A DNA stretch of 63,559 nucleotides, counting the filler, from Salisapilia sapeloensis CBS 127946 (Eukaryota > Protista > Oomycota): the NCBI GenBank assembly GCA_023334545.1. It is 14 parts of 14 records of this genome, joined end to end, with 100 filler letters (N's around TTAATTAATTAA, not from the genome) between each part and the next. Parts side by side here need not be neighbours in the genome. Positions count along the whole stretch, not along the records: positions 17,505 to 32,554 come from JAADVB010000377.1; 13 more parts are not named here. One strand, given 5' to 3'. The position numbers and the translations under genes are program-made. Under the pieces are notes generated by a model. That model was not told the DNA's origin. It saw only the letters and a program-made list of their open reading frames with translations, and did no database searches. This document shows, piece after piece, positions 17,505 to 32,554 of this stretch. The stretch's first letter is position 1, and each line of letters begins with the position of its first letter.

Positions 17505-19445
17505 ATTCGATTTACTTGCAGCATTGAGCTCTTCGCCATTTCATTGGGACGGAGTACAGTGCGAGTCGCATATATCTCTTATTATTTCGTCTACTACTGT
17601 GCTATTCTTGTTCCGAAATAATAGCGAAGAGCCCACCCAGCCTTTCGCGCGCTTTTTCAAATGTGCACACTTCGAGCACCAGGCATGCCTTAAAGTCTTC
17701 TCGAAGATGGTTTACGCTCGATTGCATTAAAGACCAAGACAGAGACAGACCAAAGATATAGAGTGGCATCTCCATTGGCAGTACAGAACACTCGCTTATG
17801 CATTTGATGTTGTGGAAGAATGTTAAATTGAATTGCTGCGTTAGATTTCGATATCACGAAGCTTATCCGAATCGGCTATTCTCAGCGAACGCGGGATTGC
17901 CCAATTCGATTATCATAAATAGAATTACAAAAGGAGAATCTCCAATGTTGCCGAATCGATATCTAGCGCGAACATGGCCTAACTGTTTTCCCAGAGCAGA
18001 AGTGTGCCACCGATCTAATAATGAAAAATCTGATTTTATTAAGCTAGAACTAGCTTTCAACCGACAACTACACCTTCAGCGAGACGCGGAATGTGATGCA
18101 ATTATGTGTGAAGATTAATTCATGCCATGTGTACAAGTCGGTTGAGTAGCTCTATGGAAATCACCATCAGTAGACAATGACACCATTATGGATTGAGTGG
18201 AAACACAAGCGTTCACATATTCTACATAATTATTTTCCAATCCTGGTTACCACAAGTTACCTAATATACGATAGATATTCACAAGTAATGATATAGCATA
18301 CAGCTGGAAGACCTTTCTTGCATTCCCAGCTGCTCGTATCTAGGACGGACGGTCGTTTTACTCATCGTAAACAATACTTAATCAAATCAAATGCATGCTC
18401 AGTTCTCCGGCATCGATGAAGCGATTGCAGACAGCCGACTTTCTTCTTAGCCGACGCGTAAGTAGAGTTTAAATTTTACTTTAGGCTGCATAGTGTCGCT
18501 GTAACTAAGGGGGCTGGTTAATTAGGTCAAGACCGTACAGCGACACAAAGCCTGATCGAAAGACATTTTAAACGCTTCGTCTTGAGCCTAAACTTTCGAC
18601 TCTTGGTTCTGCCTATTCAATCTGGTATTCTTGTCAACTTCAACGCCATCGCCATAGAAAATGAGAGACCATTTAAAAGGGGAATAAAAGAAGTGGAAGC
18701 GCATTTTTCACAGGCGGCCTACATATACTTAAGCTAGGTTTAGTCGTAGAGGAACAACATCATAAGAGTTACCTATTTCGCAGCAGAAAAGCGAAAGAAA
18801 TAAAGAATGACATGTGTATGTTGGATTCAAGAAATACATTATGCTTTAAAACTCATGGTGCAAACTCGCATGGGATCGAGAGTATGGAATGGACGACAGG
18901 TTGTAAGCTCTTAAAGTAGCAACTTCAAATAGAGCGCTACTATAAAACATCTACCTCACAAATTACTTTCAGGTGAAAGCTTTGTCACTATAAGGAACTA
19001 TATAAGCAGCTTACAAGTTGTAATTCCTCCTGACCACCAGCAAGCATAAATCTAGCCGTGTATGCGACAGCAAGCGCAGCTAGCGATATATGATCATTAT
19101 ATAATTATATAGGACAATTCGACAATGATCTTTTCTAGCATACTAAACTGTAAAGAAGGCACCGAACTTCATAATACAATCAATTAGAAGGGATAGAATT
19201 TTGTTCTGCTCTCCTCGCGTATACTTTGCATAGGAAATCTAGTTTATCTTCCTCAAACGCTTCCCTTTTTGTTCAGAAAATATAGTCCAGAAACGCATAC
19301 CTTACTCAAGTTATTATCATGCCCAATACCACTAAAACTATGCCATTTCGGTGATCGCTATATATAAAACTCAAGTACTTTGCAGTCGTACCAATACTAT
19401 GGCCTTTATTACAGGACGAACAGACACAATATCACAAGTCTCAAA

Positions 19446-19824
19446 ATGAGTGACGACCAGAATGAATTGCTACGGAACCCGCCATGCCTCCGTACTGGAT
19501 TGTTGTGGGGCATTGCGACGGGAACCTTGATAGGTGCGCATCATTACCGCACTTACAGAAACATCACAAAAGCAAGTGATTCTGCTGTACTCGTCTTTGG
19601 AGCTGTCGCCGGCATCTCATGGTATGCTAAAGCTCTTTATCTCATGGCTGACACGCATTAACATAACATCAAATTGTAGGCTCGTTTGCTCGATGGGATA
19701 CCGTACTAGGAAGTCACAGACTCGGCAGTTTATGGAAACGATGAACAATCCAAATCGCAGCTCCGAGGCAAAGGAATTCCTGAATTCGCGAGTAGAACCA
19801 AAGAGGGAAGATGATAGCAAGTAA
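19446..19824 (+). CDS. COX20: Cytochrome c oxidase assembly protein COX20-like (2 exons)
   Basis: NPPCLRTGLLWGIATG...AVLVFGAVAGISW|LVC with two hydrophobic helices. Intron 19622-19679 restores the frame. Confidence 0.75.
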
Positions 19825-20381
19825 TAGACGACCTAAAAGGACTTGGTTGATGGACACTTGTACAAGTTGTTTGGATGGAATTTAGTTAACTACACTACTT
19901 TGCAAATCTGCTCATGCTAAACTCGCTATGTGTCCGCCAAAGCAGTAACTAAACACATAGATCGGATCTTTCCAGTGCTAAAGATTGTAGACATTGAGGT
20001 AGCAAGACTTCTAATGTACCATATGTGGTTGGTATCCTGATTAAAGCAAGTAGCATAAATGCAAAATTCAATTCAAGAGGTCTATTTCAGCTCATATGTT
20101 GCGACACTTTCGCTGTACAAATATGAAGAATCAGTCCTGTCTACGCTTTTAAACATAGCCAAATAATTCTACTTAGTAGAATTATGTGCATGATTGGATC
20201 AATCTAAAGTCTGTTATTTTATCATAAGACTACATCTTCTCAAATATGCACATACAAGCATGTCAATTGATAAAAAACACAATTCCATACACAACCCAAA
20301 TATGAGACGGAGCCATATGCGTAAGATGCCAAAAGTAAAAGTTTGCAATTCTCGCCAATTGCGACTTTACCAACCTACCAA

Positions 20382-22181
20382 CTAATATTCAAAATCCATC
20401 GAAGTATCTCGATCTCCAAAATACGTCTCTGCATCCTCCACCTCTTCATTCGGATCAAACGGCGGTTCCATCTCGACATCTTCTTTCGCCTTTTCATTCG
20501 TTCCTGATTCGGCCACTTCCTCCGTCACTTCCTCCTCCGCTTCCTCCTCCTCCTTACTCTTGTTTCTCTCCTCTGCCTCCTTATCCACCATCATCTCCAT
20601 CGTATCCATCATCTCCGTATCCATCGGCGCACTCGAAACACTCAGCGCCATTTCGATCAAACGACGATTTTTCCTCTCTTCCGCCTTGAACTTTCTCTTC
20701 AATTCAGTCCGAGCTCGATCTGGAAACAACGTCGCAAGCATCCCAAAGTCCATGCCTACTTGACTTAAACACTAGCTACACATCAGTCTCTACAGTTTAC
20801 TAAAGGCAAAATTATATAAAATACATAATAAAACTGCTTCGTCTCTTCTTTCGTCCATCGACGTCTCGACTGCACTGGTTTCTCCACTTTCTTCACCTCC
20901 TCTTCCTCTGCTTCCACCTGTACACTCTTTTGTGTAATCACCATTTGGCCATTAATAATCTGGACACTCGGTTGCAACACGGTATTTCCATCTGCACTCG
21001 GAGCATCGTTTCCGAATTCAGGCACCTCCACTTCCTCCCCATTCTCCTCTTCCGTTCGTTCGCGAGTCCGTCGACGTGGAATCGATAGGGCTAATTGACG
21101 CATACTCATGATCGGCAGATCATCCGGTAGTTCCGTCTCTTCTGCAACAGCTTCTGATTCTTTCTTTGCCCTTCGGACTCTCGGAACCGGTGGGTTCGTC
21201 CATAGCGACTGCGCATACAATCGAGCTCGTTCACGCACTGGCACAGGCTACCAGAAGAGCTTAGTAACTACTTATCCACAGAATGCCATCCTTCCTACCT
21301 CTTCAACCGGCACAATTTCTTTTCTTTTACTTTTCTTTTTCGGAGTTGCTCGACTTCTCTTGTCCGTTTTCTATCTTGATGTAAGTATAGAGGACGGATA
21401 GATGTACGGTAGTAAACATACGGATTTGCTAGATAGAGTGGCGAGACGAGGTCGAGCTTTCGGTTTGTCCTGCTTCTGTTTCTTATGACTGTCCGTCTCT
21501 GTCTCTTCATTCCGTCGCTTTGGCGTTTGGAACGGTGATTGCTCCGTATCACGCTGTTTACTGGTTGATGATGCCCTCTGACTCGGAGGCACAGAAGGAT
21601 AGTCTGGAGACTCTGGTACGTCTTCACTATCATCATCCACTTGGATGGGTGTAAACGTCTTGGATGGCTGCGTGGTTGGAGTCACCTGCAGATTGGATGG
21701 AGTCGACCGTGCTTTGGACGGTGTTTTAATCGGAGATGGGGTAGGAGCAGCCTGTGTAGGTGCTGTGTTGGTCTGTGGAGTACTAGACTCTGTCTGTTCA
21801 GTGTTCTGAGTACTTGGAGGCGACTTTGTAGGCGTAGCAAATGTGTCTAGAGGTGCATCCCACACTAATGACGCGTCTCGTGACTATTGTCATCGTTCAT
21901 ACCAATATATCAATATCTATTATACCAAATATACCTGTGCAGCTGTAGCAAACTCCTCCGCCGTAGTAGCTGCATTTGTGCTTGCTTCGCTTCGTGCTAC
22001 TGGCCTCGCTATCCATCAATTCGTCATGAGAACCACTTCTTCTTCCTCTATGATAGCCCATACACTATATGCGCCAATAATAAGTACCTTTACTCTGAGA
22101 AGGCTTTGCTCTGGGTGCAATGGGCAGTCGTTTACTCTTCTTGCCCTTTCCTTTCGGTAGCAATGGCACGCGAGAGCTCAT
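20382..22181 (-). CDS. BDP1: TFIIIB B'' subunit (Bdp1-like, SANT domain), multi-exon
   Basis: RRRWTKEETKQFY...GMDFGMLATLFPDRARTELKRKFKAEERKN. PSVQIINGQMVIT upstream; first exon 22088-22181 (MSSRVPLLPK...). Confidence 0.82.
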
Positions 22182-22400
22182 CTCTGATACTCGAGACACC
22201 AACTTCCTAATTAGTGTCCAGTATTCGTGTCCAATTGGTTGAAATAGTCCAATTTCAGCCAATCCTACAACTTTCCTTTCATAGAAAGAAAGCCATATCG
22301 TATGATTGGAAGAAATGTCGAGAAACATTGTTTATTGGCTGAAAACAAGTGCACAAGAACCACCCGCACTCTACGCGATAGAAAACGAGTGAAAACGACG

Positions 22401-24465
22401 ATGGCTGACCTGCAGGACCCGGTAGCTCGCGCTCGAGCAATTGCGGCTCGACTGGCCTCGACGTTGCCTCAGAACGCCCTAGGCAAACGCAAAGACCGCG
22501 GCGAGGTTCGTACTTGTCTCCCATCCTGCCTACTCGATTGAACCGTCACCGACCCTCCCATTCTTTCATACTTATGCCCTCATGCCCATTCCCGACCCCA
22601 TCCTATACTAAATATACAGGATGATGGTAAGACATCTAGTATCAATCGATCCTGCTCTTGGAGCACCATCTAAATTTACTTTTCCAATCATTGCAGATGA
22701 CCTGTTGGCAGGCAAGAAGCGAAAGAAGGTGTATATTCCAGTGGATAAGTATCCCGATGTCAATTTCATGGGTATGTCTACCTCTCTCTTTCTTGACCTT
22801 TCTTATTTTCTAAGAATTTGCACTCAGGTCTCTTGATCGGTCCCAAGGGTTCGCATCAAAAGCGTATGGAAGAGGAATCTGGCGCGCGAATCCTCATTCG
22901 AGGCAAAGGGTCATCGAAAGACCCGTCAGGGGAACCGGATGGAGATGAAGAGATGCACGTACTCATTACAGGCGACACGGACGACGCAATTGCACGTGCA
23001 CAGTCTTCGGTCGAAAACATTCTCTACAACCCGCAAGAAGCGCAACGTCTCAAGTCGGAACAACTGAAGCAGTACGTCTACTTCCATTTCCATCTCGAAA
23101 CCATCCTTCTTTTGACAACTAAGACGAAAACTATCCATATCATACAAAGAAATTCCATAAATACACATACTAACTATAAAAACTCCATAGATGGGCAGAA
23201 ATGAATGGTACATATAATGAAAACTACCGTGCGTCTGCATATGCGCCGGAAGGAGACTCGTCGCACTATGGTCCCGCCTCGACATCCGATACGTCCGTCC
23301 AGACGGAGATGGAAGTGCCTCGAGAAATGGTCGGATACGTCATCGGTCGAGGCGGAGAGACTATTCGCGACCTTCAGACCAAGTCCGGAGCACACATCCA
23401 GGTCATCCGAGAAGATGATGGCGCGCCATTAACCGCCTACCGCTCTCTGTCCATGTCCGGTCCTCAAGACACGATCGACAAGGCCAAAGCTCTCGTCCAG
23501 CAGCTTATTGACGAGCGCATGTCGCTTAACCAACAAGGGCCTACCACGACCTCCACTTCCGCCTCTTACAAGAGCTCTTCTCAGCCTCCTGCTAGTCACA
23601 CGAATCCGGATGGTACGGAAAGTATCATCTTGATGATCCCAAATGACCGTGTCGGTCTTCTCATCGGACGTGGCGGAACGACGATCAAGAGTCTCCAGAT
23701 GCGGACACAAGCAAACGTCCACATTCCGCAGACACCAGACGAATCCGATCCGAACATGCGTCGTATTACTATCAGCGGCACGTACGACCAAAAGGAGAGT
23801 GCTCGACAGGAAGTCATGACACTCATGAGCACGAGCGACTCGGCTGCGGGAGGCCAAGGCGCTGCACCACAATACGGCAACGCTGTCGTGTACATGACGA
23901 TCCCGAACGAACGCGTTGGTGTCGTCATCGGCAAAGGCGGCGTGACGATCAAGAGCATCCAGGAACGGTATCAGGTCAAGGTGCAGATCCCGCAAGTGCC
24001 GGATCCAGGCTCCAACCCGCCTGTACGGACCATTGGCATCCACGGACATAACCAAGAGTACGTCAACCAGGCCCGAGGCGAGATCGATCAGATCGTGATG
24101 CAAGGTGCTGGTGGCGGTGGAGGATACAACTACTCTAGCGTGGACCAGTCGAGCCACTACGCGCCGTCGTACGACGCGTCGGCGTACTATGGACAGTACT
24201 ACCAGGAGGCACAGCCAGCGTCGACGGAGGAGACAGCGGATGATCCGAACGCCTACTGGAATGGCTTCTACGACTATGCGGCGTACTATGGCATTGAAGC
24301 TGCGAATGCCGCGTGGGGTGTCACGGGTGAAGCAGCGCAGCAGAGCGTTGAAAACTATCGACAGTACATGCAGCAGACGGAAGAGGTACGTTTGCTATAT
24401 TGATGTATGATAAAGATATGAGTATGAAGAATTAATGACAAAAGTAGACGTCTGGTACGTCGTAA
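22401..24465 (+). CDS. Four-KH-domain RNA-binding protein (SF1-type KH + three FUBP-type KH), multi-exon
   Basis: N-terminal DPVARARAIAARL. KVYIPVDKYPDVNFMG|LLIGPKG...IRGKGS, then VIGRGGETI, LIGRGGTTI and VIGKGGVTI. Tyr-rich C-terminus; last exon 24448-24465. Confidence 0.88.
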
Positions 24466-24515
24466 GGTTGTGCTCGCTCTTTTTTTCGAAAACAAAATGG
24501 TATTTTCGTTTCGTT

Positions 24516-26127
24516 TTATTGGATCGTGCAATTCTCCTTGGTCTTGGTCTTTTCGCTTTCGATCAAATCGGCTTGCGTCATGGATGCTGGACGTACGCAC
24601 ATTTGCAAAAAGAGTTTAAGTGTCTATTCTAGTTACGAGCAAAAGAACAAGCGCAACATACGATTAATACTCATGAGGAAGGCATCTCGAGCAATCGTCT
24701 CGAGCGCGTCCATCGTATTCTCAGCTGTCTTGGCACTCGTTTCTAGGTGGCAAGGAAGACGCGTCAATTTGCAAATTGGCACAAGTAGAAATGTTGAGGA
24801 GTACCAAGGAAGCGACAATTGTACTGCTGCGCAGTCTTTCGACCTTCTTCCGACCCGACGACTCGATTCGGTAAATCGATCTTATTTCCAACGAGGAGCA
24901 TTCCCGGTATATTCGGAGAAGAGTACTGTTGGATATTGTTCATCCAATACCCCACATCTACGAAAATACATTAAAGTCCATACACGTCCATCTCCTAACA
25001 CCAACGTACTATCAAATGACTTGCGATCACTGACGTCATACACGAGGACAATCCCATTCGCGCCCTTGTAATATGCTACATACACCATCAGCCTCGTCCC
25101 TACTCGTACACAAACCAAAAAGATATCTACTAGCTGTGATCCGATGGAAACGTTCTTGGCCGGCAGTGTCCCAGATTTGTAGCGTTATATCCTCTTCTTC
25201 AATCTGAAAATGCCGCAATTTGAAATCCACGCTACAAGCACTTGAGTACCTCCATACAAACACATAGACAAGTAGCTGTACCCTGCTGTCGCCAACATGG
25301 ACTCTGAGAAAGAGTCACCTGAAAAGACGCGCATCAGACTCGTTTTGCCCACACCTATCGGCAACGTTAACTTGATGACAGCAACATGTCCCAACAAAAC
25401 TGCACGTACCGCTATCGCCGAGTAAAAGTAACTTAAGCTTATGCTTCTTCGTACTCGACTTGGTAATCGGTGCGGCTGGCGGCTTCACTTCCTTTTCCAC
25501 TGCTGGTGCCTCGAGCTTGGGTTTCGCCGGAATCGCCTCTTTCTTACCAGCCATACTGAAGCGAGGCATGCTCTTGGAAAACATTTTCGATGTAAAGCTC
25601 GAGGCGCGAGATGTCAATGTATTTCGAGATGACTTTTCCACCTTCATCTTGGTTTCCTCCTCTTCCTCCATCTCTTTCTCTGCCAACTCGGCTTCTGTTA
25701 AGCCATCGATCTCATCTTTCTTCGGGGATACCGTCGACTGATGCAGGCCTTCCGATAGTAAATCCAGTGTCTTGGCAGACAAAGCTCCCGTCGGCTGTGG
25801 CACCTCGACTTTCGTCGAGCTCTGTTTGACATGGGACGGATCGACTGGTTTCGACCCGGCGAGATACATGCGAGACATGGAAGCAGCTCGTTTGGCTACA
25901 TCCTCATCCTCCTCGCCTCCGGCGCTGTCATTCTGGTCGTCTGACGTATCAAGAGGGGGTGGCCCGGACGTGAAGGAACAACTGCGTCGCCGGTCACTCC
26001 CGCCTTGCACATCCTCAGATCTGTCCTGACTTTCACCAACGATGGACCGACTGCGAGTCCGGCCACGACCTTCCATGGCCATTTCCATCTCTCGCTCCCA
26101 TGCCCGCTGTGCGTCGTCTTCGCTCAT
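24516..26127 (-). CDS. Rab8/Sec4-like small GTPase with long N-terminal extension, multi-exon
   Basis: KLLLLGDS|GVGKTS, WDTAGQERF, YYKGANGIVLVYD, GNKIDL and ETSAK. Splicing predicts a C-terminal CaaX (ENCTIQ*, stop 24516-24518). Confidence 0.88.
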
Positions 26128-26444
26128 GAAACGTCGATGCTGTTACTATCCGATGCAAGTGCTGCTCGCCACGTCGGGCGTAAAGTGTCTTGGTATCCTT
26201 CTAATAAATACAGGACGTGGGGAACGCCAAGGACTCGCAAATGCTACTGACGCTGCGCCTGCCTTCTCGTGGCCTGTAGAGTGATTTCTAACCAATCCAC
26301 ATGCTGGATTTTGCTTTATAGCCAATCTCAAATGAGAATCGCGTAACAAATGAAATGCTCGTCGATTACTGCCTTTCGGTGGACCTTTAGCTGTACGCTC
26401 GAGGTGCCAATGGCTTTCCAAAAATATACTTCTTTCATGCACAT

Positions 26445-27107
26445 ATGAGACGTGTGGAAAAGTTCGAGTGCAGGTTTAAAGGCGAGTCGTACCCACCGTA
26501 TGTTGTCAAGCGGCCGACGACCAAGACGAGCTCGCTGCCAGTCAATGAGCCACCTGACGTTTCCAATCAAAGCTTGCAGCCTCGACGAGTGTATCAACCT
26601 ACGCCACCTATAACTTCTGTACCTGTTACTAGCCCACCACGCCATCGTCGTCCGTCCCTATCGGAACAATTGCAGCAAATAGGTAGCAAAGTTGACGCCA
26701 TTACGGCAAGTCTAAAAGGTTCGAGAACTGCCCAAGTGTCCTCTTCCACCTCGACTCATGTGGCCGACACTGCCACAGCTACGTTGAAGCTGCAGGCAGT
26801 GCATGTGCGTGTCGGTCGGCTCGACAGTCGACTATCTAGCACCGTGCATTTCTATCGAGACCGATGCGAGTACCTCTTCCTACACCCATTTCGAGATGTC
26901 GAGATCTGCATGGTCATGTACTATCGTGACATGCGACAGCTTCATTTCCAAAAGTCGACTCGGACCTTGAAGTTTAAGGTCAATCGGCGACTACAGCACT
27001 TTGGGGAAGATTATCAACCAGAGAGCGTCCATCACTGGCTCGAACTTGCTTTTCTATCCGTCGATGACGAAAGCAAGCTCCGATCTGTTGTTCCATTTTC
27101 CAAATAA
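26445..27107 (+). CDS. Hypothetical protein with globular C-terminal domain
   Basis: 220-aa ORF: Pro/Ser-rich N-half and a well-formed beta-rich C-half (VHFYRDRCEYLFLHPF...MVMYYRDM...TLKFKV...HFGEDY). The 3' end could include an extra short exon. Confidence 0.6.
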   Translation: MRRVEKFECRFKGESYPPYVVKRPTTKTSSLPVNEPPDVSNQSLQPRRVYQPTPPITSVPVTSPPRHRRPSLSEQLQQIGSKVDAITASLKGSRTAQVSSSTSTHVADTATATLKLQAVHVRVGRLDSRLSSTVHFYRDRCEYLFLHPFRDVEICMVMYYRDMRQLHFQKSTRTLKFKVNRRLQHFGEDYQPESVHHWLELAFLSVDDESKLRSVVPFSK

Positions 27108-27446
27108 AGAATTTATCTTGTCTTTTTCTTAGATCAGAAAGTAGTACTTGAAGACATCAAGGCGGTTCATAGACTAGAGATTAATCCATACGCGCGTGGA
27201 CAGGCGCGAGGTACGAGTTATGGCGAAAACACAGGCAATTGGCATTCGATATCTGTGTTTTGGAGCTGTGCAATGGATTTCTCACAAGGTCTCTGCTACC
27301 TCACGCTATCACTTCTTCCCGTCGCAGTGTCTACGCCAGACTACAATGTACCTACGTCAGGGACGAAAATCCGATTCAAGAAAATGGAAGAAAAAAAAGC
27401 TACAACTGCACGACTTGATTCCTGCCGTGGATCCTGGCGCCACCAA

Positions 27447-27464
27447 GCTCATTCTGCCTTTCGC
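27447..27464 (+). promoter_or_regulatory. Inr+FPR core promoter
   Basis: GCTCATTCTGCCTTTCGC, about 30 nt before ATG 27493. Confidence 0.65.
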
Positions 27465-27492
27465 GCTCGACCTCCCAAGTACTACATACAAG

Positions 27493-27963
27493 ATGCAGCT
27501 CCGCAACGTCCTCTTCTTTGCCGCCATGGCCGTCACCGCCGTCTACGCTCAACAAGACACGACTGGTAACCAAGAACCTGCGGTCACTCCGACGGATGCT
27601 AGCGCCCCTGCTGCAGGAACGAGTGCATCGGGCACGATGGAAGCGTCGGGCACGAACGCCGAGGCCTCGACGGCAGGGTCCGTTAGCGAATCCGAAACCA
27701 CACCTACAACCGAAGATGCTGATGAAGACGCCACAGCGCCTGAAGACGACACTACCGAAGATGAGGCTCCTGTAGATGGCAGCGAAGAAGAAGAAGAAGA
27801 AGAGTCGATGCCTGGATCGGAAGAGACGGAAAGCGAGTCTGGCAGCGGCGAGACTTCTGACGCCTCGGGAGACTCAGGCAGCGGCTCGGACTCAGCCGTC
27901 TCCATGACGAGTGCCAGTGCTGTCGTGACGATCGCGACCGCCACGGCTGCGTACTTCTTGTAG
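27493..27963 (+). CDS. Secreted Ser/Thr/Glu-rich GPI-anchor-like protein (cluster member 1, 156 aa)
   Basis: MQLRNVLFFAAMAVTAVYA|QQD signal; low-complexity body; SGSDSA followed by a hydrophobic tail ending TAAYFL*. Confidence 0.85.
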   Translation: MQLRNVLFFAAMAVTAVYAQQDTTGNQEPAVTPTDASAPAAGTSASGTMEASGTNAEASTAGSVSESETTPTTEDADEDATAPEDDTTEDEAPVDGSEEEEEEESMPGSEETESESGSGETSDASGDSGSGSDSAVSMTSASAVVTIATATAAYFL

Positions 27964-28116
27964 ATCGCCACGCTACATGTGTCCGAAATGAATCCATTTT
28001 TCTTTTTCGTGCTCTCTCTTGTCTGATTATAACTTCACATTCACTTCAACATGTATCTTGTAGGGATGTAGTCAGCACTACTATCCTTCGACGTCAGTAG
28101 AACAACTGATCTGGTC

Positions 28117-28413
28117 ATGAACACCCAAGTATATTTTCTCACTGTACTAGTTCTCTGGACGATATGCTGGGCTGAAAAGAGCGTCATGCTGTCAAGCGAA
28201 TCATCGATCGTGCCCGGTGGACCTGGTGCCGGCGCAAGTGCTTCAAATGACAGTGACGTGCTCGATCGCATTGAAGGCTCTGCTAACGGAGAAGCTGGCC
28301 CTGCTGGCATTGAGAGCAAAGATTTAGACGACTCTGGTTCGAATGCTGCCTCGATATTCACGGGCAGTACCGCCCTTGCGACGATAAGTACCTTGGCTTT
28401 CTACTTGGCTTGA
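28117..28413 (+). CDS. Secreted GPI-anchor-like microprotein (member 2, 98 aa)
   Basis: MNTQVYFLTVLVLWTICWA signal; DSGSNAA followed by a hydrophobic tail ending LAFYLA*. Confidence 0.75.
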   Translation: MNTQVYFLTVLVLWTICWAEKSVMLSSESSIVPGGPGAGASASNDSDVLDRIEGSANGEAGPAGIESKDLDDSGSNAASIFTGSTALATISTLAFYLA

Positions 28414-28889
28414 GCAGTAATTTGAAACACGCAATAAGAATTTGCTTTTAACGGTCTATGGATGTTGCTTTCCCGATCGGTCTACAGTAGCGAACACCAG
28501 CCACTGGTGTACTAGAGGTCCCTTTACTTGCTCCATGCATGAAAGTCCCGATAGTCCATCTTCTTGGTTAAAATCGTCCAAGTTTGATTGATCATTGCTT
28601 CCAAGGTCATAAGGTCACTGCATGCTCTTGTGAAGCGCTTGGCTAAGCACAAACCAGTATGGTCGAAAGAGGAGTATAAGGACAAACCAAGTGGGGAAAA
28701 CTTGGTCTTGCTTTATTCGAGAACTTGTCTTCATTCCTAATATAAACGACATGCATACGTGCATAGTTTGACAAGCTAGTAAACAGCTAAAGTACAAGAC
28801 AAGCAGTAGCATGATCACAAAAAGGGTTACTTACCAAGCTAGGAACGCATAAAGGGAACAAATGAATAACGCGCTGGTATTAATCTTGA

Positions 28890-29168
28890 TTAGAGATAGT
28901 ACGCTAGAGCGGATGCAGTCATGAAGACCGTCGCACCAGCATGCACCATTGTTGCAGCGTCCGAGTCGTCGGACTTGTCCGAGCTTTCGGCGCTCATATC
29001 GTCGACATCAGAAGAATCCATCGACACACCGGTTGTGGAATCAGCTTCACTCGCAGCATTCGAGAGGATACTACTAGCCGTTTCAGCTTGGCGACCGTCA
29101 TTGTCCTGTGCTAGAACGCCTGCTAGCATGATCAAAGCTAGTGAAAGCAGAAAGAGGCGAATGTGCAT
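28890..29168 (-). CDS. Secreted GPI-anchor-like microprotein (member 3, 92 aa)
   Basis: MHIRLFLLSLALIMLAGVLA|QD signal; DDSDAA followed by a hydrophobic tail ending LAYYL*. Confidence 0.8.
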   Translation of the reverse strand: MHIRLFLLSLALIMLAGVLAQDNDGRQAETASSILSNAASEADSTTGVSMDSSDVDDMSAESSDKSDDSDAATMVHAGATVFMTASALAYYL

Positions 29169-29870
29169 CGTCGTCTAGCGAGAAGAAATGGAAAGTGTCA
29201 AAGTCGTGGTACGCAGGTCGTAGTCAGATTTGAAGGGAACGACAAAGAAGTGCTTTTGAAAGACAGAAGTAGCCTTTGAATACTAGATGATCTTCTTCCC
29301 AAGCTACCAATCTAGAGAACTCACTGAATCTACTCGAGCGTGCATGCACATCGCTTTGATCGCTTCCGAGTGACTCTATGTCTATCAGATGTATATGCGA
29401 AGTGTCATGGGTCTTGAAGAGGAAGCAATCCGTCTACAGAGATTCGATTAGTCCGTACGACATCCAATCTAGTGATCTGCTCCAGGTAGGTACAAGTAAA
29501 GATCATGCACGGTCAGGACATACGATATAATCGCTTCTTGGTGCCATACGAGCACTTGCTACGGTACTATAGTCGCCTCCTTGGACGTAGCAGCAAGAAA
29601 CATCATGGCACCAAAGGCATTTCCACGTCAAATTTCGAGTCGAATGCTAGACCTAGTGACTATGTACTCTCCACTAACACAAAGAATTAACCTACATTTG
29701 ACTGCGAAAATAAAAAAAACATCCTCGGTAACACGCATCCTTGAATATAAACACCACTTCGTACTCCCATTTACTCTTGTAACTAGTATGCATCCTCTTT
29801 TGTCATATCCCTCAGTTTGGATGCACCCGCGTCAGTCACTTCAACCAGACAAAAGATCGTCTTTTTATTT

Positions 29871-30294
29871 TCAAAGGAAAAATGTAGCAGCAGTGGCTAT
29901 GGAGACTGCAGCACTAGTGATACGACCCATGGCAGCATCTGAGTCACTTCCTTGCTCGCTGGCTATTTCACTTCCACTGGATTCCTCGTTGCTGCCAAGC
30001 ATCGAATTCATACCACTGTTGGAAACCTCGGATCCACTCTCTTCGCTCGTCTCGCTCTGACCAGACCCGGTGGATCCATCTGCGACTATCTGGTCGGTGT
30101 CATCCAGCGGGGTCTTTGTCAGGTCCAAATCCACGGCTTGAGAGGCACTAGTATCGTGTAAATCTCACATCACAAAGCGAGAGCCAAGTTTTCATGATAA
30201 CATACCTTTCGCCATCATTCGGGTCTGGGGCTTGGCCATGTGCTGTACTGGCGAATGCGAGTACGGCGAATCCAAGTATTGGCAAGAACTTCAT
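29871..30294 (-). CDS. Secreted GPI-anchor-like microprotein (member 4, 2 exons)
   Basis: Exon 30206-30294 (MKFLPILGFAVLAFASTAHG|QAP), GT-AG intron 30148-30205, exon to 29871 ending SDSDAA...AATFFL*. The ORF track splits it into two ORFs. Confidence 0.82.
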
Positions 30295-30308
30295 GAGCGT
30301 AAAAGCGA

Positions 30309-30324
30309 GTAAAAGTGGAAATGA
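30309..30324 (-). promoter_or_regulatory. Inr+FPR core promoter
   Basis: TCATTTCCACTTTTAC upstream of ATG 30294. Confidence 0.65.
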
Positions 30325-30407
30325 CTTCTCATCCAAGAGGATGCATCCTAGAGCACAAAAATTCCTCACCGTTCTGTCCGAGTTACCAGATAAAGTGTCC
30401 GACCACA

Positions 30408-30423
30408 TCATTTTCAATTCTAC
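30408..30423 (+). promoter_or_regulatory. Inr+FPR core promoter
   Basis: TCATTTTCAATTCTAC upstream of ATG 30438. Confidence 0.6.
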
Positions 30424-30437
30424 TTTTCAACACGCAA

Positions 30438-30734
30438 ATGCATTCCCAAGTACTCTTTACGACCGTGGCAGCTGCGCTCGCCATTGCCTCTGCTCAGTCC
30501 ACGTCTGGTAGCGAAGGTGCCAGCAGTTCCGGCTCTGGAGCGGCCCCTGCTGTGTCCAACTCACTTACGGATAGTGAAAGCGCGAGTCTTGAGCAAGCCA
30601 TGTCCTTCATCCAGGACAGCAGTGGTACATTCGAATCCATGTCCGGGTCGTCTGGAAGCGATGGAGCGCCGACATTAACGGTAAGCGGCGCCGTGGTCAC
30701 TGTCATGGCCGCGACGGCAGCTTACTTTGCTTAA
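30438..30734 (+). CDS. Secreted GPI-anchor-like microprotein (member 5, 98 aa)
   Basis: MHSQVLFTTVAAALAIASA|QST signal; SGSDGA followed by a hydrophobic tail ending TAAYFA*. Confidence 0.82.
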   Translation: MHSQVLFTTVAAALAIASAQSTSGSEGASSSGSGAAPAVSNSLTDSESASLEQAMSFIQDSSGTFESMSGSSGSDGAPTLTVSGAVVTVMAATAAYFA

Positions 30735-30834
30735 TACAGTACCACTTTTCTTTTCTATCGACTATTCTTTCTTTTTCTTGATTACGGAAGATGGAGGTAG
30801 AGTGTTGGTAAAGATAATATATTGCATGTAGCAT

Positions 30835-31353
30835 CTAGAGGAAGTACATGGCAGTGGCCGCCACAACAGTCACGGCAGAAGTTTGCATCACACTGGCGCC
30901 GTCGGAGCCATTGTCTGCTGAAGAATCGGACGAAGAGGTCTTGGATGAAGATGGCTTGGCCAAGTCCTTCTTGATACCGTCCAGGAGACTTCCAGCGCCA
31001 GACTTCAAGTTACCCTGCGCATCCTCGATGCCGGAGCCGAGATTCGCAAGTGTTTCCTTGGCATCCGACCCGAGGTTTTTATACGCTTCCTTGAAGTCCG
31101 ATCCACTGTTATCGAAGAAATCAGATATTTCCTCCATCACCTTTTCGGTATTGCCCTTGATTTTAGAGCCTGCTCCGCTGGCAGCATCCGCCAGAGTCGA
31201 GCCTATTTTTTCCGCAATCTCTTTCGCGTCAGAGCCACCTTCGTCCAGTTTATCCTTGGCATCCGGTAGAGTGTTTTTGATATCCTCAGTGTCTTGTGCG
31301 TACACAGTCGAGATGGCGAGCGTCGCGAGAACGAGAATGGAGCGGAGTTGCAT
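30835..31353 (-). CDS. Secreted GPI-anchor-like protein (member 6, 172 aa) with amphipathic-repeat body
   Basis: MQLRSILVLATLAISTVYA|QD signal; GSDAKE/GSDFKE repeats; NGSDGA followed by a tail ending TAMYFL*. Confidence 0.85.
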   Translation of the reverse strand: MQLRSILVLATLAISTVYAQDTEDIKNTLPDAKDKLDEGGSDAKEIAEKIGSTLADAASGAGSKIKGNTEKVMEEISDFFDNSGSDFKEAYKNLGSDAKETLANLGSGIEDAQGNLKSGAGSLLDGIKKDLAKPSSSKTSSSDSSADNGSDGASVMQTSAVTVVAATAMYFL

Positions 31354-31380
31354 GTTGATAGTAAAGACTTGAGACGTTGC

Positions 31381-31400
31381 GAGCAAGTGCGAGAATGAGC
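31381..31400 (-). promoter_or_regulatory. Inr(+FPR-like) core promoter
   Basis: GCTCATTCTCGCACTTGCTC upstream of ATG 31353. Confidence 0.55.
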
Positions 31401-32554
31401 TGAGAGTATCATCTCGAGATCGTCATCCGATCAACGTAGAGATGCGATTGGATGAAATGCGGCATAGTATCCATCCGAATGTTTCTTCGAAAAGAATTCA
31501 ATGGTTTTCAAGGCGGATTCTTTGCCGCGGTTCGGGTGGATATGCTTTCCGTCATGATCTCACTGCGGTACGAAATGTACTAGGTGCGTGGGAATTTTTA
31601 TCACCATCCAATATCGTTTGACATGCGAGCTGGAAATTTCTGGCATTGCATGCGAGCGAGGAATATGGAGCTACCAAGATATGAAAGATTATGAAAGCGA
31701 GCGCAAAGTCTCGTAACCTAGGACGTATCCAATTTATTCCATTACATGGTTCCGTTTCTTTGCCGTACCACGCGTCAATAGTATCGTTTGCAAGTGTAGA
31801 GCATAGCATATTCTATAAAATGAACGCAAGTGAGTAGAAACAAGTCTTCTTTCCCGTTTTCAATGTCATTCTTTGTCGTCGAACAAGCCTTTTGAGCAAG
31901 AAAGAGTTGTCTTGCTATACAATATTGGGGGCTGATGCCGACTACGTACTCTTCCATCTCTCTCGAGACAAGCTATATCTCTCGCACCGTCAAGGGTAAG
32001 CTGAGACGCAGTGGATTGTGCTGCGTAGGATGCTGACGTATTGTACCTTGTCAAGGGAACACGAACCCAACACTTTTATTACAAACGTAGACGACGGGCA
32101 AGAGAATGCAATGCTTTCTCCTTTGCATCCCGCTAGAAGGTCCGTCTACGAGGGCAAAATCGAAATATTCAGGAGATGTTGCAACTAAAATAGCTAAAAG
32201 AGAGTGAAATAAAGAGCAGAAAGTTGAGACTAATAAGTAAGCTGCTTAAGCTCGGGAATTCAATATACAACACTAGATGGAAGTTCTCGACAATGCGCGC
32301 TCAACTAAAATTCTTGGATGCTGAGAGACATGGGGATTCATGCTTTACCTACATATAGTCGATCTACTAGGATTAGAAAGACGATGACCACTCAGCAGTA
32401 GGTGCGCTACCCCCATGTAGTTGAAGCTTTCGGCACCCAGAAAGTGGTGGACACTGATACCTCTACTTCCAAGATTTTCCCGAATAGTTTTACTACTACA
32501 CGATTATCCGGAAGCCTAGTATCTGGTCTGGAGGAACAATAAAGCCCAACGACC

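Follow-up and report, generated by a model that had tools for sequence, protein, structure and literature searches.

Six old paralogues in an oomycete gene cluster encode predicted GPI-anchored acidic surface proteins

The genome of the oomycete Salisapilia sapeloensis CBS 127946 (assembly GCA_023334545.1) contains a cluster of six short genes whose products are probably acidic proteins of the cell surface or wall, held there by a glycosylphosphatidylinositol (GPI) anchor. The cluster lies in a stretch of 63,559 nucleotides (nt) joined from 14 parts of the assembly, hereafter the window. We analysed the 15-kb piece of the window that carries it (17505-32554, from JAADVB010000377.1). All coordinates are those of the whole window. 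The six genes occupy 27493-31353 in the strand order +,+,-,-,+,-. They share their two protein ends and the plan of their composition. The proteins are probably divergent members of the oomycete HAM34-like class. For this reading as a whole we estimate a probability of about 0.68.

Gene models

The coding sequences (CDS) are listed below with the lengths of their products in amino acids (aa), the predicted signal peptides, mature parts and C-terminal tails. Omega denotes the residue at which the GPI signal is predicted to be cut.

27493-27963, + strand: g1 CDS, 156 aa; signal peptide 1-19 (cut between VYA and QQ); mature part about 114 aa; omega D133 in GSDSA; 23-residue tail ending AAYFL
28117-28413, + strand: g2 CDS, 98 aa; signal peptide 1-19 (cut between CWA and EK); mature part 57 aa; omega N76 in GSNAA; 22-residue tail ending AFYLA
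28890-29168, - strand: g3 CDS, 92 aa; signal peptide 1-20 (cut between VLA and QD); mature part 50 aa; omega D70 in DSDAA; 22-residue tail ending LAYYL
30294-30206 + 30147-29871, - strand: g4 CDS in two exons, 121 aa
30206-30294, - strand: g4 exon 1; signal peptide MKFLPILGFAVLAFASTAHG (cut before Q), then 9 residues
30148-30205, - strand: g4 intron, 58 nt, GTATGT...TAG, read directly from the sequence
29871-30147, - strand: g4 exon 2; acidic body, omega D100 in DSDAA, 21-residue tail ending ATFFL, stop codon
30438-30734, + strand: g5 CDS, 98 aa; signal peptide 1-19 (cut between ASA and QS); mature part 56 aa; omega D75 in GSDGA; 23-residue tail ending AAYFA
30835-31353, - strand: g6 CDS, 172 aa; signal peptide 1-19 (cut between VYA and QD); omega D151 in GSDGA; 21-residue tail ending AMYFL

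An earlier description made from the DNA by eye (the sequence-only reading) had announced six short open reading frames (ORFs) of 92-172 aa on strands +,+,-,-,+,-, and all of them are present. Two of its details change. It treated g4 as a single ORF. The gene is there, but its signal peptide sits on a separate first exon before the 58-nt intron, and a frame check shows that the reading frame is restored once the intron is removed. It also let the cluster begin at 27447. The locus is correct; the coordinate belongs to the core promoter of g1, not to the g1 CDS.

Four of the genes are overlapped by antisense ORFs of 70-174 aa: g1 (27549-27971, -), g3 (28921-29178, +), g5 (30494-30706, -) and g6 (30848-31372, +). 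These long antisense frames have no signal peptides, no tails and no upstream initiator element. The low-complexity coding sequence, rich in GAN/AGC, produces them as a side effect, and they can mislead gene callers.

Protein architecture

Both ends of the proteins follow one plan. Checked by hand against the usual rules, all six N-termini qualify as signal peptides: the core is hydrophobic (best mean hydropathy over 8 residues, 2.6-2.9), and positions -3 and -1 are occupied by small residues. Cleavage is predicted at residue 19 or 20 in every case. Five of the proteins would be cut before Gln, as had been claimed, and the sixth, g2, before Glu. At the C-terminus each protein carries a site of the form S-[D/N]-[S/A/G]-A, with D or N at omega and Ala at omega+2. 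Omega is followed by 21-23 residues in 6/6, a short polar spacer and then a segment that stays uncharged to the last residue. The uncharged C-terminal run measures 15-23 residues, is rich in Ala, Thr and Ser, and has a mean hydropathy of 1.35-1.81 over its last 14 residues. The chains finish with [YF][YF][LA], to which g2 adds one extra Ala. The sequence-only reading had given the site and the six endings exactly as they are listed above.

The predicted mature parts between these ends are 50-132 aa long, contain no Cys and are almost without aromatic residues. Their isoelectric points (pI) lie between 4.05 and 4.41, their net charges between -7 and -34, and Ser and Thr together make up 20-41% of the residues. 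The mature part of g1 has a net charge of about -34 and includes a run of eight Glu; that of g5 consists of Ser and Thr to 41%. The statement that the proteins are free of Cys holds for all mature parts. It does not hold for the g2 precursor, which has one Cys inside its signal peptide. Tandem Repeats Finder (TRF) reports a (GAA)6.7 array, which codes for the Glu run of g1, and otherwise two weak 15-nt arrays of about two copies. Pfam searches with all six proteins returned sub-threshold low-complexity matches only.

Six old paralogues

How unusual are the shared tails? For a census we translated the piece in six frames and collected the 30 residues that precede each stop codon, which gave 311 frames. 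An uncharged, hydrophobic tail with an aromatic end occurs in 6 of the 311, and these six are the cluster genes. One other frame ends in an aromatic pair, but it has two charged residues and low hydrophobicity. A seventh copy was not found in the 15-kb piece, where tblastn with each tail recovers the other five only.

The similarity of the tails greatly exceeds that of shuffled sequences. Over the last 24 aa the mean pairwise BLOSUM62 score is 29.9, compared with -3.3 +/- 2.4 for shuffled tails (z = 14). If the polar and the hydrophobic zones are shuffled separately, the null rises to 1.7 +/- 2.5 and the tails still reach z = 11. Signal peptides score z = 7.5 against their shuffles. The bodies of the six proteins do not align with each other. 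Hence the picture of unalignable bodies between two conserved ends is borne out, and the notion that the tails are unrelated, generic hydrophobic ends is contradicted by z = 11-14. Scores of this size mean that the tails share a common descent or are constrained to a single pattern.

The nucleotide differences show that the relationship is old. In the last 22 codons the proportion of synonymous differences (pS) is 0.75, which is saturation, and that of nonsynonymous differences (pN) is 0.50. Pairwise identity is 47% at first, 51% at second and 32% at third codon positions. Saturated synonymous sites combined with this pattern mark the genes as old paralogues under amino-acid constraint. The same pattern excludes recent duplication or gene conversion as the cause of the tail similarity. 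The codon-position-specific constraint also argues for real coding genes. Judged by these comparisons, the locus is a strand-mixed tandem family of six old paralogues.

Core promoters

The core promoter elements defined for oomycetes are an initiator (INR, YCAYTYY) and, after a gap of 2 nt, a flanking promoter region (FPR, MWTTTNC); the INR+FPR pair is reported to be oomycete-specific and tied to above-average, stage-regulated mRNA levels (PMC3599244). We scanned both strands of the piece (30,100 strand-bases) and allowed at most one mismatch in the FPR. The pair occurs four times. All four occurrences are in sense orientation, 30-45 nt upstream of the ATGs of g1, g4, g5 and g6 (P ~1e-6 for this placement at 4/6 genes). 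That at least four genes have an INR-FPR of their own had been proposed before and is true of these four; g2 and g3 have an INR alone.

27449-27464, + strand: g1 core promoter; INR TCATTCT, 2 nt, FPR-like CTTTCGC (1 mismatch), 44 nt upstream of the ATG
28041-28047, + strand: g2 INR alone, TCACTTC, 76 nt upstream of the ATG; a second INR at 27994
29185-29191, - strand: g3 INR alone, CCATTTC, 23 nt upstream of the ATG
30309-30324, - strand: g4 core promoter; perfect INR+FPR, TCATTTC CA CTTTTAC, 30 nt upstream of the ATG
30408-30423, + strand: g5 core promoter; INR TCATTTT, 2 nt, FPR-like ATTCTAC (1 mismatch), 30 nt upstream
31383-31398, - strand: g6 core promoter; INR TCATTCT, 2 nt, FPR-like CACTTGC (1 mismatch), 45 nt upstream

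The genes g4 and g5 have a common divergent intergenic region of 143 nt. A 10-bp palindrome, GGATGCATCC, is found in the middle of this divergent promoter at 30339-30348, and GGATGCAT is seen again once downstream of g4 (29788-29795). For GGATGCAT there are 3 strand-matches where 0.48 are expected, a number that 2 of 100 shuffles reach. The palindrome motif may be a shared regulatory site. A scan for bacterial-type promoters and terminators, which is not relevant to an oomycete, gave background level.

Predicted processing and location

A signal peptide together with a chain-ending hydrophobic segment and a small-residue site about 20 residues upstream of it gives a protein the classic architecture of a GPI transamidase substrate (the Eisenhaber and Udenfriend rules). 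Those rules that can be checked by hand agree with all six proteins; about 17-30 residues are expected after omega, and here there are 21-23. The sequence-only reading had taken the end architecture for a GPI-attachment signal, and the rule checks side with it in 6/6. Since the Ala/Thr/Ser-rich tail is only weakly hydrophobic, a transient GPI signal fits better than a permanent membrane helix.

The proteins would then mature as follows. The N-terminal signal peptide would carry each of them into the endoplasmic reticulum (ER). There the GPI transamidase would cut at the D or N of S-[D/N]-[S/A/G]-A, shed the Ala/Thr/Val tail of 21-23 residues and add the GPI lipid. The mature product of 50-132 aa would be very acidic (pI ~4), Cys-free, rich in Ser, Thr, Gly and Ala, largely disordered and perhaps glycosylated. 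It would be placed on the outer face of the plasma membrane or handed on to the wall. Together the six products could form a hydrated, negatively charged coat. The O-glycosylated coat and the likeness to a variable glycocalyx locus that the sequence-only reading put forward would be further possibilities.

Opposing evidence and rival explanations

Several observations weigh against GPI-anchored, HAM34-like surface proteins. The assignment of signal peptides and GPI signals comes from rules that were checked by hand, and the conserved aromatic C-terminal end goes beyond what GPI signals are known to require. The body of g6 differs from the other five. It is rich in Lys, Asp and Glu, repeats GSDxKE- and GSGxED-like motifs every ~11-15 residues and is followed by a Ser-rich stalk. 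Weak sub-threshold Pfam matches of g6 are to families of amphipathic helices (apolipoprotein, YtxH, ApoLp-III), and a single-sequence AlphaFold model of low confidence (predicted local distance difference test, pLDDT, 50) is all-helical at residues ~24-132. The Lys-rich body of g6 is thus possibly helical according to the model.

The homology searches are the other opposing evidence. A word-indexed search with g6 found no homologue among the 8000 candidates that it scored, those that had the largest number of words, mainly low-complexity ones, in common with it. A profile of the six sequences found no homologue at E <= 10, a single chance bacterial match at E = 8.6 aside. In the alignments g4 was represented by its exon 2; the joined g4 protein served for length, composition and comparisons inside the window. 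An exhaustive HMMER search with a profile of the last 40 aa gave 0 matches at E <= 0.001 among 1.84 billion representatives, a library in which a profile of 40 positions needs ~41 bits to reach E = 0.001. Searching the JGI metagenomes with g6 yielded no match. Blank sequence searches are weak evidence for short, low-complexity proteins such as these. A single positive lead came from the ESM Atlas, where the nearest to g1 among 7.7 million clusters is annotated "HAM34-like membrane protein". Its 52 members all come from Oomycota, and the representative is 172 aa long. With g1 it scores 0.85, below the 0.9 line of the tool, and 144 of 256 features are shared, so that the match was rated as a lead only. 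The Atlas matches of g6 (suprabasin and an ascomycete cluster) reach only 0.80 and were treated as chance.

An exact look-up of 15 protein models in a collection of 15 billion proteins found none of them present. The models covered g1, g2, g3, g5 and g6, with alternative starts for four of these genes. This absence could be taken to mean that the ORFs are not genes at all but frames left open by chance in low-complexity, GA-rich DNA, and the antisense ORFs of similar length over g1, g3, g5 and g6 would fit such an explanation. It is nevertheless very improbable. All six frames combine a signal peptide, the common tail and a sense INR, and their conservation depends on codon position. The intron of g4 is canonical and restores the frame. 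All four INR+FPR pairs of the piece stand 30-45 nt upstream of an ATG. The missing records say little in this case, because the whole genome seems to be absent from the collection: a KH-domain gene next to the cluster has no match above 53% identity.

If the genes are real, the C-terminal segment could still be something other than a GPI signal. It might anchor the protein permanently in the membrane, as in a type I protein that has no cytoplasmic tail, or be a propeptide for sorting or retention that is later removed and bears an aromatic end. GPI signals are not known to need the [YF][YF][LA] end, and its retention across saturated paralogues suggests a specific recognition event. Against this, the tail is short and weakly hydrophobic (see above) with no residue after it, and the small-residue site is conserved at a fixed distance of 21-23 residues, as in transamidase substrates. 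We regard a segment of either kind as improbable, less so than chance frames.

The main rival to HAM34-like membership accepts the GPI anchor. It is a lineage-specific family of GPI-anchored coat proteins that has no common descent with HAM34-like proteins and resembles them by convergence, as procyclins and small mucins do. Sequence searches that return no homologue, bodies that cannot be aligned even among the six and an Atlas match below threshold all speak for it. However, the searches have low power for motifs of 30-40 aa and for low-complexity bodies, and the best neighbour among 7.7 million clusters is restricted to oomycetes and matches the description exactly. We therefore think convergence unlikely, albeit the most serious of the rivals. 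Under the same unlikely alternative the cluster would be a lineage-restricted, fast-diversifying coat locus independent of HAM34. Selection would act on the two trafficking ends only, with the bodies free or driven to change, and the oomycete GPI transamidase or an ER-exit factor would recognise the [YF][YF][LA] motif.

Genomic surroundings

The KH-domain gene lies at 22818-24403 (+). It is FUBP-like, has three KH_1 repeats and ends in a 400-aa last ORF at 23201-24403. Its protein is 45-53% identical to orthologues in Phytophthora, Pythium/Globisporangium, Albugo, Bremia and Peronospora, and ~37-42% identical to those of Saprolegniales. Identities of at most 53% indicate an oomycete without a close relative in the protein collection, and for this reason none of the exact cluster proteins that were tried is on record. 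The INR+FPR pairs likewise mark the piece as oomycete DNA. In the JGI metagenomes, where the KH neighbour was sought for synteny, only relatives of 27-32% identity were found.

Between the KH gene and the cluster is a gene for a Rab-like small GTPase (~24760-26127, -) with an acidic or low-complexity N-terminal extension of ~250 aa. Its G-domain (GDSG.. / VGKTSL / WDTAGQE / NKIDL) is spread over several short ORF pieces, a layout that implies four or more short introns. For a peronosporalean oomycete this gene is unusually intron-rich. Directly upstream of the cluster, a 220-aa ORF (26445-27107, +) has no Pfam match and no record in the protein collection. The segment 17505-20400 has a GC content of 37-44% and almost no ORFs of at least 100 aa; the remainder of the piece is gene-dense, with a GC content of 47-59%.

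Significance

Gene callers readily miss small low-complexity GPI proteins or model them wrongly, although such proteins can be among the most abundant molecules of a cell surface. The cluster offers a clean set of six diverged paralogues, taken from an oomycete lineage with little sampling, in which one can see the residues of signal peptide and GPI tail that are still fixed at synonymous saturation. It is therefore a natural data set for defining the GPI-attachment signal of oomycetes. The four compact INR+FPR promoters, among them the divergent pair in 143 nt, could serve as expression tools. What is notable about the locus is the clustering of six genes, the conservation of both ends despite a very old divergence and the aromatic C-terminus that the copies have kept; it is no new class of system.

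Comparison with known systems

The closest known system is HAM34. The gene ham34 reportedly got its name in a paper of 1990 as a "highly abundant message". Compared by description and by the Atlas cluster, the six proteins fit the HAM34-like class, and we consider membership somewhat more probable than not belonging to it. Both groups come from oomycetes and are small, and the descriptors acidic, Ser/Thr-rich and GPI-anchored agree with the properties that we computed. HAM34-like is an existing annotation name for oomycete proteins, including those of Phytophthora, and a target of this name has been used for RNA interference sprays (PMC13725644, PMC8554022). The sequence-only reading had expected annotation to dismiss genes of this kind; the existence of the HAM34-like class, whose name the nearest Atlas cluster of g1 carries, contradicts it. 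Oomycete vectors use the ham34 promoter of Bremia lactucae as their standard strong constitutive promoter (PMC4696810), to be compared with the four INR+FPR pairs here. By its promoter type the cluster might also produce abundant mRNA. It may differ from HAM34-like proteins, known here by description, in its six clustered and strongly diverged copies and in its conserved aromatic C-terminal end.

Fungi have Ser/Thr-rich GPI proteins too, one of them being SGP1 of Ustilaginoidea virens (PMC8079714). These fungal proteins share with the cluster a signal peptide, a Ser/Thr-rich body, a GPI signal and a location in the wall or at the surface. They are usually larger and not strongly acidic, and homology is not indicated.

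The procyclins (EP/GPEET) and the small mucins of TcSMUG type are short trypanosomatid precursors that are encoded in multi-copy loci and form a dense surface coat. Like the cluster proteins they start with a signal peptide and end with a GPI signal, and the disordered body in between is acidic or rich in Ser and Thr. Unlike them they belong to an unrelated lineage, have bodies of tandem peptide repeats and show no sequence similarity. Should the six genes form a lineage-restricted coat locus, they would be a stramenopile counterpart of the procyclin and mucin loci of trypanosomatids.

Within oomycetes, the CAR mucin-like proteins of Phytophthora are made of tandem octapeptide repeats. CAR and the GPI-anchored elicitin-like (INL) proteins are, like the cluster proteins, Ser/Thr-rich and surface-bound or secreted, and INL proteins have a GPI signal. 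Membership in a repeat-type mucin (CAR) or procyclin family is ruled out, as TRF finds no tandem peptide repeats in the six genes. INL membership is ruled out as well: the mature parts contain no Cys, compared with six in the elicitin domain, and there is no Pfam match. By analogy, the coats built from CAR, procyclin and INL proteins may still work like the coat that we propose for the cluster.

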